A stretch of 38,605 nt of DNA from Neoconidiobolus thromboides FSU 785 (Eukaryota > Fungi > Entomophthoromycota): assembly GCA_025603075.1 (NCBI GenBank), contig MU626444.1, positions 1 through 38,605 of the forward strand. Direction: 5' to 3'. Shown piece after piece: positions 9,677-28,857 of the stretch. Position 1 is the stretch's first letter. Each line of letters starts with the position of its first letter. The notes below the pieces were generated by a model, which saw nothing but the letters and a program-made list of their open reading frames with translations, did not search any database and was not told where the DNA came from. The position numbers and the translations under genes are program-made.

Positions 9677-10671
9677 TAAATTTATCAAAATAAGAAAAAC
9701 GAACAAAGAAGTTGGAATGTTGGTGATATGATACAAGTTTTATACTAAGTAGTTCAAAGTATCATTATATCTTTCTGAAATGTCAAGTTACTTCATACTT
9801 AAAATTCATGAGTGTTTCTGGTTTTATTTTTGTTCAATTTAGTTTAGTACAATAAAAAATAGCCATATTTAGTAGGTTGATTTAATTCTTTAGTTCTAAA
9901 TCTATAAAAAATTTAAATTATTTTTGATCCAAGATTCATTGAGTTAAATAAAGTTAAATATTTATTTTTACACAATTTAATTGGCTGTCTACTTGAAATT
10001 TATTGTTCATATTATTTGTTTATAGTTGAAATATTTATCATCTGCCATTTTAAACTTGTTTTTAAACTAAACAAAAGAATTGTTAAGTTTCAATTACTTA
10101 ATTTATAAATCCACTATTGATATTGACATAAATTTATTATTAGAGCTATATGAATCTAAGACTTAATTTTTGTATTAAAAGTTAGTCACAATACTACCTT
10201 AATTATATCATATTAGCATTAAATTACATCCTACTATTACTGTATTTATAACAAGACCTATAAAAATATAGTCTGGTCTCTTTTCAGAATATCAACAAAT
10301 TGGATCTTTTTTAGTTTAAATGGAGTACAGCATGCTATAAACTATGTACACGAAATTATATTCAACTATAATTATTTCTACTCAAACTAATACGTTGATG
10401 ATATTTAGTATAGTAGAGAGTGATTCATTTTAATAGAAACAAAAACGATACTTGGCTATGCAATCCCCCAACCAACATTTCGGGGTATCTTCTTTGCTTC
10501 AGTATCTATCTGGTAGCTTTATTTTATTATATATTAAGTAAATAATCCCTATTCTTATATTATTCTATTGTAATATATAAAATTTAAACTATTGAAAATA
10601 AACACTAATAAACCACTCTTAATTTATTAAATAAAATTTACTTATATTTTAATAATCATATACTGTATGCT

Positions 10672-23367: not shown

Positions 23368-24371
23368 ATGCCACAGGATACAACAGGAGTAAAAAGCTTC
23401 TTAAGCGGGGGGATTGGGGGTATGTTTTTAGTTATCTCTGGACATCCATTAGATTTAATTAAAGTCAAACTACAAACAAGTAACCAAAGTTTTTTACAAT
23501 GTTTCCAATCCCAATTCAACTCTGGTATAAAAAGTTTTTATCGTGGAGTAGTCCCCCCATTATTGGGAGTAATGCCCATCATGGCTACCACTTTTTGGGC
23601 TTATGATCTAGGGATTAAAATGCAGAGATGGGGAACAGTAAGTTTAAAGAGCTAACTAATGAGGTTTTAAAGCAAATAATAATAATCGTTTTGATAGAAT
23701 GATACTACAACACCAAGAAGTATCTCAGAGGTAGCAATAGCGGGAGGTTTCTCAGCTCTACCAGCAGTGGTAGTAGTAGCCCCTGGAGAAAGGATAAAAT
23801 GTTTATTGCAAATCTCAGACGCAGGTGGTAAAGACAAAAAAACCATGATACAAGTTATCAAAGATACAATAAAGAGGAAAGGTTTTTTTGGGCTTTATCA
23901 GGGCACTACTATTACACTATTAAGAGATATCCCTGGTTCTATGGCTTATTTTACAATTTATGAAGTGTTAAAGAAAGAGTTGGCTGGAAATGATAAGAAT
24001 AGTATTCTACCTATCATTGTTGCTGGTGGTGTGGCTGGTATGGCTAATTGGGCACTCGCTATGGTAAGAGTTTATAAGTTAGCTCACTTTAACATCCACT
24101 TTACTTATAATTTCTTAGCCCTTTGATGTGTTAAAAAGTCGTATTCAAACCCAAGAAACAAGTTTAGGTATCAAAACCACATTTAATCAATTGGTAAAAG
24201 CAGAAGGTTACAGAGGTTTATATCGCGGTTTAGCGCCTGCTCTTTTAAGAGCTTTTCCTGCTAACGCTGCTTGTTTCCTAGGTACTTTCATAGCTTATTT
24301 TTTTATATTTGTAATTAATAATGTTACTAGGAGTGGAACTATCGTTACAATTAATGAATACATTATTTTAG
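23368..24371 (+). CDS. CRC1: Mitochondrial carnitine/acylcarnitine carrier, SLC25 family (279 aa; exons 23368-23637, 23698-24063, 24119-24281, 24331-24371)
   Basis: Three carrier signatures GHPLDLIKVKLQ, PGERIKCLLQ and PFDVLKSRIQ; RDIPGS and RAFPANAACF are typical of CACT; introns of 60, 55 and 49 nt. Confidence 0.92.
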
Positions 24372-24502
24372 AATATAATTAATTTTAAATTAAGTTTGTA
24401 TAGAATATTATAAAAGTAATAAAGTAATAGAAATGATATATATTTTATTAGTTTAATCACTACCTAATTATTTTTTTACTTTGACTTAAGTGACAATTAA
24501 TA

Positions 24503-26867
24503 TTACTCCATCTCTGAAATTTCGCTTATTTTATTGTTAGACTGCGCTTCTTCATTTAGTTTATCATCTTTATCGTCCTCTTGACTTAATTTTTTAACTT
24601 CTTCATTATCATTCTGGGTATGATTTTCCAATTGATTGTTAACATTGTTTGATTCCATTTCCGATAAACTATCATGATTATTATGATTGTTAATAATATT
24701 TAAAAGGATGGCATTTGTATCATCATGTATACGTTGCTCTTCATTATCATTATTATTTTCTGCCAATCCTTTTAATGTATTTTCAATTTTATTTACTAAT
24801 TCATTTGTATCTTCTTCATTAAAAACTAATTCGTTTCTCTCCATTTCCTCGTTTTTATTTATCTCATCATCGTCGCCCATTTCCTTGTTGTTGTCTTCAA
24901 TTAACCAAGTTCTTGATTTACAAGAATCGATAAAGTTAGTATCTACTACTAACTGAAACTGTCCATCCCTTTTTTCTATCAAGCCTTTATGAAACCAAGT
25001 ATGTAAAGCAGTCTTTGATACTTTAGCGACCTTTGCTAACTCAGTAAACGTACGACACTCGCTTGTATCCAGATTATTGAAGATATTAAAAACCTTTTCT
25101 TTTAACTTTAAGAAATTTTGTTCTTCTTCAGAAACGATATTGACCCCTGGCTGAAAATAGCCATTTACTTTAATAATTTTTTCTTGTCTTACCCAATTAT
25201 ACAAGGTCTTTTTAGGCACATTAGATGCTATTGATAGCTCATCTAAGCTTTTACATACGTTTCCTCCCACTTTGGCAAATGCATGCGTAACATCCCTCTT
25301 TGGTCTTGTAACGTAGGGTTGTCCATAATCGAGATCATCTAAGATAGGTTTGTAAAACTCACCAACTTTATGTAATTTCCCTCGATTATACCAATTCCTT
25401 AATGTTGATTTCGGTACTTCTGTCAATTCAGATAGCTGTTCAAAAGTACTACAATCATGCGAATTTATAATCCCAAAAATCTTTAAAATATCTCTTTTGA
25501 CTTTTAAATCCTTACTTAATTCTTCAAAGTTGATCGCTGGTTTATATACTCCCTCCACTTTAACTATCCTTCCCTTGCAGTACCAATCATAAAGTGTACC
25601 TAATGGCACTTGGGTGGCTTGGGATAATTTTTGAAATGTTTTGCATGCGTTTTTTTCAATTAATGAATAAATCTCTAACATATCTCTCTTTATTAATGGC
25701 GATTCTTCTCGTTTACCTTTGACTTTCTCTCTTAATCTATATACTTTTTGACCTGATTAAATTAGATTAAATAATTAATACTATTGCTTAAGAAATAAAC
25801 ATACCATTATCATCATCTTTATTTACTTCCCCTTCTTCACTATTTTCCTTATTATCCTTATTATCTAACTCTTTTTGTTCATCTTCATCGCCTTTAGACC
25901 TTAAGGCACCACTCTTTTTGACAATTAAGCCCTTGTAAAACCAGTTATAAAGAGTAGCTTTAGGGACCTTAGTAGCTTCGGCTAATTCTTTAAAACTTTT
26001 ACAATTAGCGCTATCAATTTTGGGCAAAATCTCGTTAACATCCCACACCATCTTTTTCTTTTTGACTGATCCAACATTACTTTTATAAACACCATCATCC
26101 AACTTAATCTTATCATTGTCAAAATATCCTTTTAATGTATTTATATCAATCTTTAACAACTCATTCATCTCTTCGTATGTTCTACAATCTTTTTCTTCTA
26201 ACTTACTCAATATCTCTTTTAAACTATCCTCCTCCATTAACTTACCCCTTCTCTTTCCTATACTTAATTGCTTTTCATACTCCTTTTCAATAGCACTCAT
26301 CTTACCCTCATCCTTGCCTTCTTGATACCCCATACTCCCTTCTTCCATTTCATCATCACTTTTATTCTCTTCTTGAGTCCCTTCGCCTTTTTCGATAACT
26401 TCATCATTTTCAATATATCCATTATTGATAGCATGTAAAAACTGAGAAGACAAAAGGTCAAGTTGGTTTTTAATTTCTGTTTGCTGATGGAGTTCTTGAA
26501 ATGCTTCTAGAATTGTTGTGTTTATCTCGTCCTTTTTAGCAGCTAAATTCCTATTCTCTTCATCTACTGGAATTACTTTATTTTCTTCTACTGACAAAGA
26601 GATTGTCTTGGTACTCGTCTCAACAGGTAATAAAGGAGTGACGCCTATTTGTGTATCTATTGCTTGTTGTTGAGCTTTGTCTGAGTCACCTGAGTTATTA
26701 ACTATTAAAGAGTCTTCAGTTAAACCTTTTTCTACTGTAGCTTTATCTTTCTGCTGATCACTGATTTTACCCTCATTTAAGTTCTCATTCAATTGATGTT
26801 CATTTTCAACTTTTTGTTCAATCTCCTTTTTTTCAATTGTGATGGTGTCATCGCTAATATTTTCCAT
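24503..26867 (-). CDS. Protein with six tandem winged-HTH-like repeats and acidic low-complexity ends (~770 aa; exons 26867-25805, 25752-24503)
   Basis: A 52-nt GTATGT...CAG intron (25753-25804) joins the two track ORFs in frame. Six repeats of consensus I.......C.(S/T)F.EL...T.VPK.TLY.W...G.I.K..G.Y. Confidence 0.85.
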
Positions 26868-26954
26868 TTATTTTTTCTTTTTGTCTTGAATAAAAAGAAT
26901 AAATTTTTTTTGTTTGATCCCCCTTTTTGTAATTCAAACCTTATCCTAATCATA

Positions 26955-26995: not shown

Positions 26996-27257
26996 AAGGT
27001 GAAATGGCTTGGGTACTAAGATTCTTTTTGAAAAGAATTTAAGGTTGAAAATTAAATCTTACAAATTTGACAATTCTATTTCAAATAATTTGCATCAATT
27101 TTTAGAGAAAACTATTTATTTATTTATTTATTATTAAATCTATTTTAATTTGTATGGTTTTGACAAAATTTTATCCTTAAATCAACTATTAAATAGGTCC
27201 CAGCATAATTAAAACAGCTATATCTTAAACACTAATAAATTAGCTTTGAAATAAATA

Positions 27258-27421
27258 CAACTGTTGCAGCTCTTTTGTGGCCGCTTTAGCGGTAGTTTTT
27301 ATAGTTAAGTTGTCTGTACAATTGATCCTTTCAAAACTTAGCCTTTGTATTTTAACTAGTATAACATAAAATATTTTCTTAAACGAGTGGTAGTTAAGTC
27401 GCAAAAGAGCCGCAACAATTG
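27258..27421. mobile_element. MITE family 2 (164 bp), Tc1/mariner-like
   Basis: 24-bp TIRs (27258-27281 / 27398-27421, 20/24 match) flanked by TA on both sides. Confidence 0.7.
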
Positions 27422-27867
27422 TATTTAGACTGAATTAAATTATAGTTATTTTTTGAAAGCATGTTTAGTGATATGATATAGCTGTTCTAGCCCTTTACAC
27501 TTTAATAAAGCTTTTATCAAAGGCCCTTTTTTGGATATAAAATACAGTAACATAGTATTCGAAACAATTTAGTTAACCAAATAAATTACAAAGCAATAGC
27601 GAAATTTAGTATAATAGATTATCTAAATAAAATGAAAGCGTAAAACTTAAATGACTTAAATGGTAGCTATACATTTATTATAAGCTAAATCTTTATTTTT
27701 ATTTTCAAATCTACAACAATCAATTACAAATTAAGTATATTTAAATAGAAGTTACAATGACCATTTGGCTTAATAGAAAAGAAATAATAAATACCACTAT
27801 AAACAATATTGAAAATAAATTCAAAAAGACATTAATTTTTAATAAAAACATAAACAATAAAAAGCAG

Positions 27868-28857
27868 TTAACTACTTGAAAGCTCAGTCCCAGTTACTAA
27901 ATCCTTACTTGAGGAATACTGGAAGCTAGCAGTGGTCTGATAATGCTCATAGTCACCACCTTCTCCCCTGAACAAACTTATTATTCTTTTCCTAGAATCT
28001 GGGTGCAAAGTGATAACAAACAATGGATTTAATATCGTTTCACTAAATAATAAAAACAAACAGATACAATCTACTACATACGATCTTTCATAATCATCTA
28101 TAGCTTCAATGACTAAAACTATAAATTCCGGTAATAAACTGCACATATAAAGTAATGTAAAAACAAACAAAAAAGCGATATGTTTTGATTTATAAAATGC
28201 TACACTTTTACTGAAGCTACCCGAAGAGGCTCTCAATCTTTGATTCGTTTCAAAATAATGTAATGAAATCAACCCATAAAATAACGGGATAGAAAATACA
28301 ATTGGATAGATAATAATAAACATAATTGTAACATAAATTGTATGCTCCATTGAAACATGTGTTTCTGTAGTAGAAATACACAGCAAGCCAGAAGGCAAAA
28401 GCCTTGATACACCCTTAATTTTGGTAATAATAAATATGACCACAGTAACTAATACAATCACTAAAGATATAAAATTGGTTTTTACGTTGCTTATGGTATA
28501 TGATTTAACAATTGCTAGATAACGAACTACAGATAATTGGGCAGTCAAGGCCATGGCTGATATTGCTGTGCCATTATATAATATGGAACTTAAAGAGCAG
28601 TAAGCACTCTCTTGAAATTCAATTGGTGTTGTGGACAAACTCCATTTGGCTATTTGAGTAACATCTAAGGATAAAGCTACTAAGATATCAAAGACAGCTA
28701 TCCAAGTTATTAAATATGCATCCACCGCTTTTCCTCGTGTATTTTCAATATTGACTATATATAGAACTAACAAATTTAATATAATTGAAAAAATACTGTA
28801 GATAAACATAAATATCTCGAAGGGTTGTGAGTAAGCGACTTCTTTTGGGATGTACAT
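27868..28857 (-). CDS. Class A-like 7TM receptor, 329 aa, intronless (subfamily B)
   Basis: LN, FD, YC, VRY, PSGLLC, LPEF and SETILNPLFV motifs. Confidence 0.9.
   Translation of the reverse strand: MYIPKEVAYSQPFEIFMFIYSIFSIILNLLVLYIVNIENTRGKAVDAYLITWIAVFDILVALSLDVTQIAKWSLSTTPIEFQESAYCSLSSILYNGTAISAMALTAQLSVVRYLAIVKSYTISNVKTNFISLVIVLVTVVIFIITKIKGVSRLLPSGLLCISTTETHVSMEHTIYVTIMFIIIYPIVFSIPLFYGLISLHYFETNQRLRASSGSFSKSVAFYKSKHIAFLFVFTLLYMCSLLPEFIVLVIEAIDDYERSYVVDCICLFLLFSETILNPLFVITLHPDSRKRIISLFRGEGGDYEHYQTTASFQYSSSKDLVTGTELSSS

Follow-up and report, generated by a model that had tools for sequence, protein, structure and literature searches.

Six homologous units with a predicted winged helix-turn-helix fold in a spliced gene of Neoconidiobolus thromboides

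Does a fungal protein that carries the same small helix-turn-helix (HTH) unit six times in tandem read DNA unit by unit, or does the array serve another role? The question is raised by a minus-strand gene on contig MU626444.1 of Neoconidiobolus thromboides FSU 785 (GenBank assembly GCA_025603075.1), which we analyzed over the whole stretch of 38,605 nucleotides (positions 1 to 38,605 of the forward strand) and which we refer to here as the window. The six units are homologous, and the gene, which we call the HTH-array gene, produces spliced transcripts and evolves under purifying selection. We infer that it is a real host gene whose product is probably a nuclear, multi-module protein binding double-stranded DNA, most likely as a lineage-restricted transcription factor. 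An initial annotation of the locus, made by reading the window without database searches, had proposed six tandem winged-HTH modules of excisionase or MerR type at 24950-26190; it had the locus right but the range slightly short, as the repeat array spans 24920-26234 and the coding sequence 24503-26867.

The gene, its transcripts, and its six repeats

In this AT-rich window (GC ∼27%), the coding sequence runs from 26867 to 24503 on the minus strand and is interrupted by a single 52-nt GT..AG intron, whose removal unites two minus-strand open reading frames (ORFs; 26867..25788 and 25681..24503). Exon 1 (25805..26867) begins with the ATG at 26867 and extends through codon 354 to the first base of codon 355; the intron, in phase 1, occupies 25753..25804; and exon 2 (24503..25752) carries the remainder of codon 355 through codon 770, followed by the stop at 24503-24505. 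Reading the ORFs across this splice gives a coding sequence of 2313 nt and a protein of 770 residues, the size (∼770) that had been read from the window by removing the 52 nt, and the translation is identical to NCBI KAI9292496.1, annotated as "hypothetical protein K502DRAFT_332308" of the same strain.

We took advantage of RNA-derived contigs that contain the HTH-array locus, which carry three coded organism labels. A 4002-nt contig from run X1 has 0 differences from the window and skips exactly 52 nt. The same 52 nt are skipped in a contig from run X6 (organism C), which is ∼5.6% divergent from the window in exon 2 and ∼7.5% divergent in exon 1. In both contigs, the spliced joint lies at 25750->25803 with plus-strand ends CT..AC. 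Contigs from runs X2 and X4 stop at the splice sites, where their loose ends match the opposite exon, and exon 1 is covered by RNA contigs as far as 26864-26874. Because these contigs cover the gene with the intron removed, we conclude that the gene is transcribed and spliced; RNA had been suggested as a check on the intron, and its removal is seen directly in the X1 and X6 contigs. Runs X2 and X4 (organism B, 24300-26900) contain two transcript variants, one of which is almost identical to the window while the second carries the organism C differences and is ∼10% divergent in places. The two variants could represent a mixed culture, a heterokaryon, or a hybrid.

There are 191 differences between the window and the transcripts with other organism labels, and our tally of selection covers the 40 that are listed. 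Synonymous changes made up 32 of these 40, and 33 of the 40 fell at codon position 3. Of the 8 replacements, those at codons 321-337 fall in the linker that follows repeat 2, those at codons 663 and 675 in the C-terminal tail, and a single conservative one (V423I) in the wing of repeat 3. Given this excess of synonymous and third-position changes, and with replacements mostly in linkers and tails, the data indicate that the HTH-array gene is under purifying selection which is strongest on the HTH cores.

The array consists of six units of ∼62 amino acids, which align without gaps over 62 columns and in which a Cys at column 17 and a Leu at column 34 are invariant. In a leave-one-out analysis, profiles built from five repeats recovered the sixth at E values between 6e-24 and 2e-13, the weakest being that of repeat 1, and the profile of the full set matched exactly six copies within the protein, far beyond chance. 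At the level of sequence, these results support the earlier suggestion that the units are products of internal duplication. The duplications are old, because pairwise identity between repeats is low (23-39%) and no repeat is left at the DNA level. The invariant Cys is found at residues 228, 289, 391, 455, 521, and 587, with spacings of 61, 102, 64, 66, and 66 residues; both positions and spacings are exactly as initially annotated.

The protein begins with an acidic N-terminal tail (residues 1-205, 26253..26867, minus strand like all features of this gene; pI 4.3; 48 Asp and Glu versus 21 Lys and Arg), which is closed by the basic patch KRRGK (205-209). Repeat 1 (residues 212-273, 26049..26234) is degenerate and acidic (pI 4.9) and is without the VPK..W signature. 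Repeat 2 (residues 273-334, 25866..26051; leave-one-out E 1e-22; pI 9.5) has the patch KKKK (269-272) just before it and contains a stretch matched by the Pfam models Phage_CI_repr and HTH_17 (287-315). It is followed by a ∼40-residue linker with acidic and basic residues (335-374, 25694..25865), which holds the intron and divides the array into a two-repeat block and a four-repeat block. The second block comprises repeat 3 (residues 375-436, 25508..25693; leave-one-out E 6e-24), repeat 4 (439-500, 25316..25501; E 3e-20), which has the best Pfam stretches (HTH_17 and MerR), repeat 5 (505-566, 25118..25303; E 4e-17), and repeat 6 (571-632, 24920..25105; E 2e-17). An acidic, Asn-rich C-terminal tail (633-770, 24506..24919; pI 4.2; 39 Asp and Glu, 29 Asn) completes the protein. 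Repeats 2-6 have pI values of 8.0-9.5 versus 4.2-4.3 for the tails, and Pfam identified no credible domain in either tail. The peptides, basic patches, and acidic tails that had been pointed out in the window are all present.

Predicted fold and family resemblance of the unit

We modeled repeat 3 as a single unit with AlphaFold2 (AF2), using the six repeats as the alignment, and obtained a mean predicted local distance difference test score (pLDDT) of 83 (∼90 over the core) and a predicted template modeling score (pTM) of 0.63. The model contains helices at positions 5-14 (H1), 20-27 (H2), and 31-39 (H3), strands at 43-46 and 49-52, and a short helix at 56-59; the invariant Cys is located in the H1-H2 loop, where it may have a structural (packing) or a redox role. 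When residues 200-640 were modeled from the single sequence, the order helix-helix-helix-strand-strand recurred six times, including in the degenerate repeat 1 and in repeats 5 and 6, with pLDDT <50 in the linkers (<35 in the ∼40-residue linker) and a pTM of 0.21. From these models, each unit is predicted to be an independent three-helix winged helix composed of H1, H2-turn-H3, and a β-hairpin wing; the three-helix core with its tight H2-H3 turn is present in the AF2 models, and the C-terminal hairpin is predicted in 6/6 units. The modules are predicted to be connected by flexible linkers of ∼13-18 residues, plus the one acidic linker of ∼40 residues, and to have no fixed packing between them, like beads on a string.

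Searches with the modeled unit returned winged HTH (wHTH) domains. Using Foldseek against the PDB, we found the N-domains of ArgR/AhrC, MarR/NadR, AspA, Sso10a, IclR, and the wHTH of O-methyltransferases (E 0.09-0.4, template modeling score [TM] ∼0.55), and VIA-align gave Z scores of 4.5-5.8 over 52-62 residues for ArgR, HmgR, CggR, MarR, the winged-helix (WH) domain of SAMD1, SmtB, and the WH domain of SelB. AlphaFold DB clusters and Swiss-Prot concur with a wHTH assignment, and the cluster library includes some "excisionase family" entries; across the PDB and both AlphaFold DB libraries, the top structural matches were overwhelmingly wHTH domains. The scores are modest, as one would expect of a domain of only 62 residues. 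The models support the initial proposal that the units fold as winged HTH domains. A Z-alpha domain appeared at rank 37 of the Foldseek PDB matches (TM ∼0.4), and what we take to be the signature residues of that Z-DNA-binding domain are not present in the units.

The best structural matches of the unit are three-helix wHTH domains of the ArgR/MarR type, not Xis or MerR. ArgR/AhrC, MarR, IclR, DeoR/CggR, and ArsR/SmtB all have the H1-H2-H3-β-hairpin topology predicted for the unit, and they give the best superpositions (Z 5-5.8, root mean square deviation 2.1-3.5 Å, 52-62 residues), many of them with structures solved in complex with DNA. These proteins differ from the HTH-array protein in that they contain one wHTH per chain and form dimers or hexamers through other domains, and a profile search of PDB sequences detected no kinship with them.

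Pfam scores were summed over the part of the protein encoded by exon 2 and judged by whole-protein cut-offs. Phage_CI_repr (PF07022) summed to 50.1 bits (E 3.6e-13, cut-off 22 bits) over four stretches, each of which covers only profile positions ∼10-38 of 65, with E 3.6e-5 for the best single repeat. HTH_17 summed to 43.7 bits (E 3.4e-11, gathering score 27 bits), where only the sum over repeats passes, MerR to 32.8 bits (E 6e-8), and MerR_1 to 27.5 bits. When single repeats were compared with Pfam, none reached a cut-off (best E values 3.6e-5, 1.1e-3 for HTH_17, and 1.9e-3). The matched positions are 3-31 of 51 in HTH_17 and 4-26 of 38 in MerR, and the family resemblance is limited to H2-turn-H3 and the first wing strand. 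HTH_23 (E 0.023) and HTH_Tnp_ISL3 (E 0.02) were both far under their cut-offs, and the HTH_psq, CENP-B_N, and Myb models had no Pfam match in the exon 2 part.

The motif had therefore been called correctly as excisionase- or MerR-like, in that HTH_17, MerR, and Phage_CI_repr all match it, but the likeness begins at H2 and goes no further than the first part of the wing, and membership of the excisionase or MerR families is not established by sequence. Beyond the HTH, the unit departs from them in two ways: a further helix at its N terminus gives it the layout of a canonical three-helix wHTH, and it has no MerR coiled coil. HTH_17 membership is not supported, as no single domain scores above 27 bits and the profile is matched only in part, and an excisionase-type context, as this is a 770-residue, intron-bearing eukaryotic protein with no integrase or inverted repeats around the gene. 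MerR family proteins consist of an N-terminal wHTH, a long coiled-coil dimerization helix, and an effector-binding region (PMC5859096); in addition to the partial profile match, no long helix follows any modeled unit, and MerR membership is likewise not supported.

Among the closest known counterparts is the MerR-excisionase group of BldC, lambda Xis, and RdfS, whose signature over H2-turn-H3 and the first wing strand (..EL....VPK.TL..W...G.I.K) is common to the HTH-array units. The MerR/BldC topology is α1-α2-β1-β2 (PMC5859096), and the lengths of these elements agree with the HTH-array unit from H2 onward. RdfS is an oligomeric wHTH with an additional N-terminal helix (PMC11963761), and in this extra helix it is like the HTH-array unit. 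BldC binds head to tail on 9-bp direct repeats (PMC5859096), and BldC, Xis, and RdfS all assemble head to tail on such repeats, an arrangement that a covalent array would mimic. They are, however, single-domain bacterial or phage proteins of ∼50-90 residues which form non-covalent oligomers, whereas here six modules are joined in one eukaryotic chain.

Pipsqueak, Myb arrays, and the paired domain likewise use tandem small HTH units to read an extended site. Their units are three-helix bundles that have no wing, whereas the HTH-array unit has a β-hairpin wing and an invariant Cys before H2. The Psq domain of Pipsqueak reportedly comprises four repeats, as is said to have been described by Lehmann et al. 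in 1998. A resemblance to pipsqueak and CENP-B HTHs had also been suggested for the units; Pfam did not recover it, and membership of the pipsqueak, CENP-B, and Tc1-mariner HTH classes is not supported, as no model passes and a wing is predicted in every unit versus none in those classes. We would classify the protein as a putative DNA-binding protein of the tandem-HTH kind, whose repeated unit is an orphan winged helix bearing an HTH signature similar to that of MerR and excisionases.

Relatives and the question of a mobile-element origin

A phmmer search with repeats 3-6 against 1.84 billion representative proteins returned the protein itself and one other, P0002 (467 residues, E 7e-4). A word-index search with residues 206-640 against 5.8 billion clusters returned only the protein itself, in a one-member cluster; no relative turned up when metagenomes were scanned with the protein; and among PDB sequences, searched with a profile, even the best match, a TetR-type HTH, was not significant (E 0.017). 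Motif-pattern scans of viral and metagenome contigs (37-62% GC) yielded small ORFs of 56-205 residues which each contain one copy of the unit, over columns ∼19-44 only, and none of which is an array. A language-model atlas offered leads of <0.9 only, among them multi-HTH proteins of Bacteroidota and viral hypothetical proteins. These searches support the view, already taken in the initial annotation, that the protein is lineage-restricted, with no detectable relatives in about 15 billion proteins.

P0002 deserved closer comparison. It has 3-4 tandem units with a period similar to that of the HTH-array protein, is collinear with repeats 3-6 over four units at ∼25% identity, and also has the Cys before H2. 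Aligning the profiles of the P0002 family and the HTH-array repeats with hhalign gave a probability of 96.5% over 26 columns, covering the HTH only; as a control, a phage HTH_17 ORF chosen by its motif gave 95.7% over 25 columns, which is the same score. We therefore rejected the P0002 family as true relatives. Membership of the P0002-type Cys/His family is not supported either, since only the first Cys is common to both and the QCGxH...CHFC set is otherwise unmatched. P0002-family units differ from the HTH-array unit in their extra Cys and His and in their partner domains, which are C2H2 fingers or an unknown C-terminal domain.

The P0002 family is of interest in its own right. Its other members (P0004-P0011), from marine and other metagenome assemblies, have 1-4 tandem units of the form QCGxHS...VPK(S/T)TL..W...CHFC, in which Q-C-G-x-H before H2 is invariant, as is a Cys, usually in C-H-F-C, after the wing position. 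This pattern suggests a zinc-stabilized HTH. In P0008, such units are fused to a C2H2 zinc-finger array. P0007 is found on ∼4.3-5.1-kb contigs from several samples, and the same pair of ORFs occurs on contigs L007-L010. L007, a 5115-bp contig of marine (Tara) and other metagenome origin, carries terminal inverted repeats of 172 nt (1-172 and 4928-5099, 95%) and ∼10 tandem copies of the 12-nt unit GTGTCACAAACA at 308-475; its ORF1 encodes 617 residues with three tandem Cys/His HTH units, and its ORF2 encodes 511 residues with no Pfam match. By its sequence features, L007 appears to be a eukaryotic DNA transposon that has yet to be described, and the P0002 family would be at least partly transposon-borne.

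These similarities raise an alternative for the HTH-array protein, in which the DNA-binding part of a mobile or phage-like element was domesticated as a chromatin protein of architectural or repeat-binding type that coats or marks repeated DNA such as MITEs (miniature inverted-repeat transposable elements), transposon ends, satellite, centromere, or telomere and does not act at gene-specific sites. Its motif is closest to HTHs of mobile elements (HTH_17/excisionase and Phage_CI_repr), a similar motif occurs in the tandem HTH protein of the transposon-like L007, and filament-forming wHTH proteins such as AspA are among the fold matches. There is also precedent, as several eukaryotic tandem-HTH factors derive from transposase DNA-binding domains (PMC1702500). 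A MITE-like inverted repeat with 26-nt arms (92% complementary, 124 nt apart) lies at 27252-27427, 385 bp upstream of the start codon. However, the similarity to the transposon-borne family covers 26 HTH columns and is no better than that to a phage HTH_17 ORF, and the transposase or phage origin suggested in the initial annotation could not be demonstrated, both similarities being equally shallow (25-26 columns). No inverted repeats flank the HTH-array gene, and no transposase or integrase is nearby; the gene has an intron and host-like composition and is single copy in protein collections; and its acidic tails fit an activator at least equally well. We consider a chromatin protein of this kind unlikely, though it is the alternative we take most seriously. 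We also rejected two simpler accounts, that the gene is itself a transposon (there are no flanking inverted repeats and no DNA-level repeats) and that it was recently acquired from bacteria or is a contaminant (it carries a spliced intron, has a host-like composition, and is without a bacterial homolog beyond the motif).

A putative multi-module DNA-binding protein

The pattern of conservation within H3 favors DNA binding by the array. Columns 33, 34, 37, and 38 (Thr, Leu, Trp, and an aromatic residue) are conserved across the repeats, whereas columns 32 and 39 are different in each repeat and columns 35 and 36 are variable, which sharpens the earlier remark that recognition-helix residues vary. 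Such alternation is expected if the recognition helix is amphipathic and its exposed face differs by module. The wing region also has conserved residues, namely Gly at columns 41 and 48 and a Lys at column 45.

Were the protein a multi-module DNA-binding factor as we favor, its covalent head-to-tail modules would occupy consecutive sub-sites, in one orientation, along ∼50-65 bp, and one chain would do what BldC, Xis, and RdfS-type proteins do on direct repeats by forming head-to-tail oligomers. With H3 positions 32, 35, 36, and 39 differing by module, each module might have its own sub-site preference, and the 2+4 split of the array suggests a bipartite site. Repeat 1 probably makes no DNA contact, because it is acidic and has lost the signature. 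KRRGK and KKKK may act as nuclear localization signals, and both acidic tails could be activation or partner-binding regions. A stronger version, in which the six modules form a programmable reader of a ∼50-65-bp site through H3 positions 32, 35, 36, and 39 and represent a lineage-specific expansion of HTH arrays in entomophthoralean fungi, strikes us as improbable; if true, it would parallel the C2H2 zinc-finger arrays of animals with a different fold.

We were concerned by several observations that count against a DNA-binding host factor. No tandem DNA array that could serve as a target is visible across the 38.6-kb contig. The repeats are mildly basic at most. The alignment behind the single-unit AF2 model consisted of six paralogous rows, and the fold-search statistics are weak (Foldseek E 0.02-0.4, Z <6) and speak for a common fold only. 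The selection tally covers a subset of the differences. In the organism C contig from X6, an extra T in an A7/T7 run at 25649 (exon 2, codons ∼388-390) would, if real, disrupt the reading frame; this insertion is probably an assembly or sequencing error, because the third-position bias persists downstream and the matching organism B variant is without it. Finally, winged helices can bind RNA or proteins too, and the VIA-align matches include the SelB WH domain bound to SECIS (selenocysteine insertion sequence) RNA.

The last point leads to the possibility that the array binds RNA or acts as a protein-protein scaffold. Tandem WH domains in such roles exist, the SelB-SECIS complex being one of our own matches, the net charge of the repeats is modest with repeat 1 acidic, and fold similarity alone does not give function. 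Nevertheless, the repeats display classical HTH conservation, with the hydrophobic face kept and the exposed face of H3 variable, both H3, at its beginning, and the wing keep a conserved Lys, and all sequence-level matches are DNA-binding HTH families. On balance, an RNA-binding or scaffolding role appears improbable to us, and we continue to favor a DNA-binding protein.

The surroundings of the gene had prompted the suggestion that it regulates a cluster of G protein-coupled receptor (GPCR) genes. Intronless ORFs at 27871-28857 and 8699-9736, both on the minus strand and of 329 and 346 residues, match Pfam 7tm_1 (PF00001) above its gathering score (E 4e-10 and 8e-9, respectively), and three ORFs of similar size near them have no Pfam match. 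Rhodopsin-family GPCRs are uncommon in fungi. A 196-residue ORF with two Kunitz/BPTI domains (E 2e-18) lies at 7271-7858 on the minus strand. The immediate downstream neighbor of the HTH-array gene is a convergent mitochondrial-carrier gene, and RNA contigs join the HTH-array gene to its spliced 3′ exon across 24327-24505, which means that the 3′ ends of the two transcripts overlap or abut within ∼120 bp. That the protein is a dedicated regulator of the surrounding receptor genes is suggested by position, with rhodopsin-family 7TM genes on either side, but the neighbor it adjoins is the carrier gene, eukaryotic regulators in general are not linked to their targets, no shared motif tied to this protein was found, although no search aimed at one was made, and nothing in the context links the protein to the receptors; we regard this idea as highly improbable.

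Zinc-finger, Myb, Psq, and TALE (transcription activator-like effector) arrays all let cells recognize long, specific sites through small DNA-binding units in tandem, and engineered DNA readers are based on them. Among described eukaryotic architectures, we found no six-module array of a MerR/excisionase-type winged helix. If there is no modular binding, the HTH-array protein would be an ordinary lineage-restricted putative transcription factor. If instead its modules each bind DNA in turn, the protein would reproduce within a single chain the head-to-tail wHTH filaments of bacteria and would provide a new handle on how regulators are invented in early-diverging fungi.

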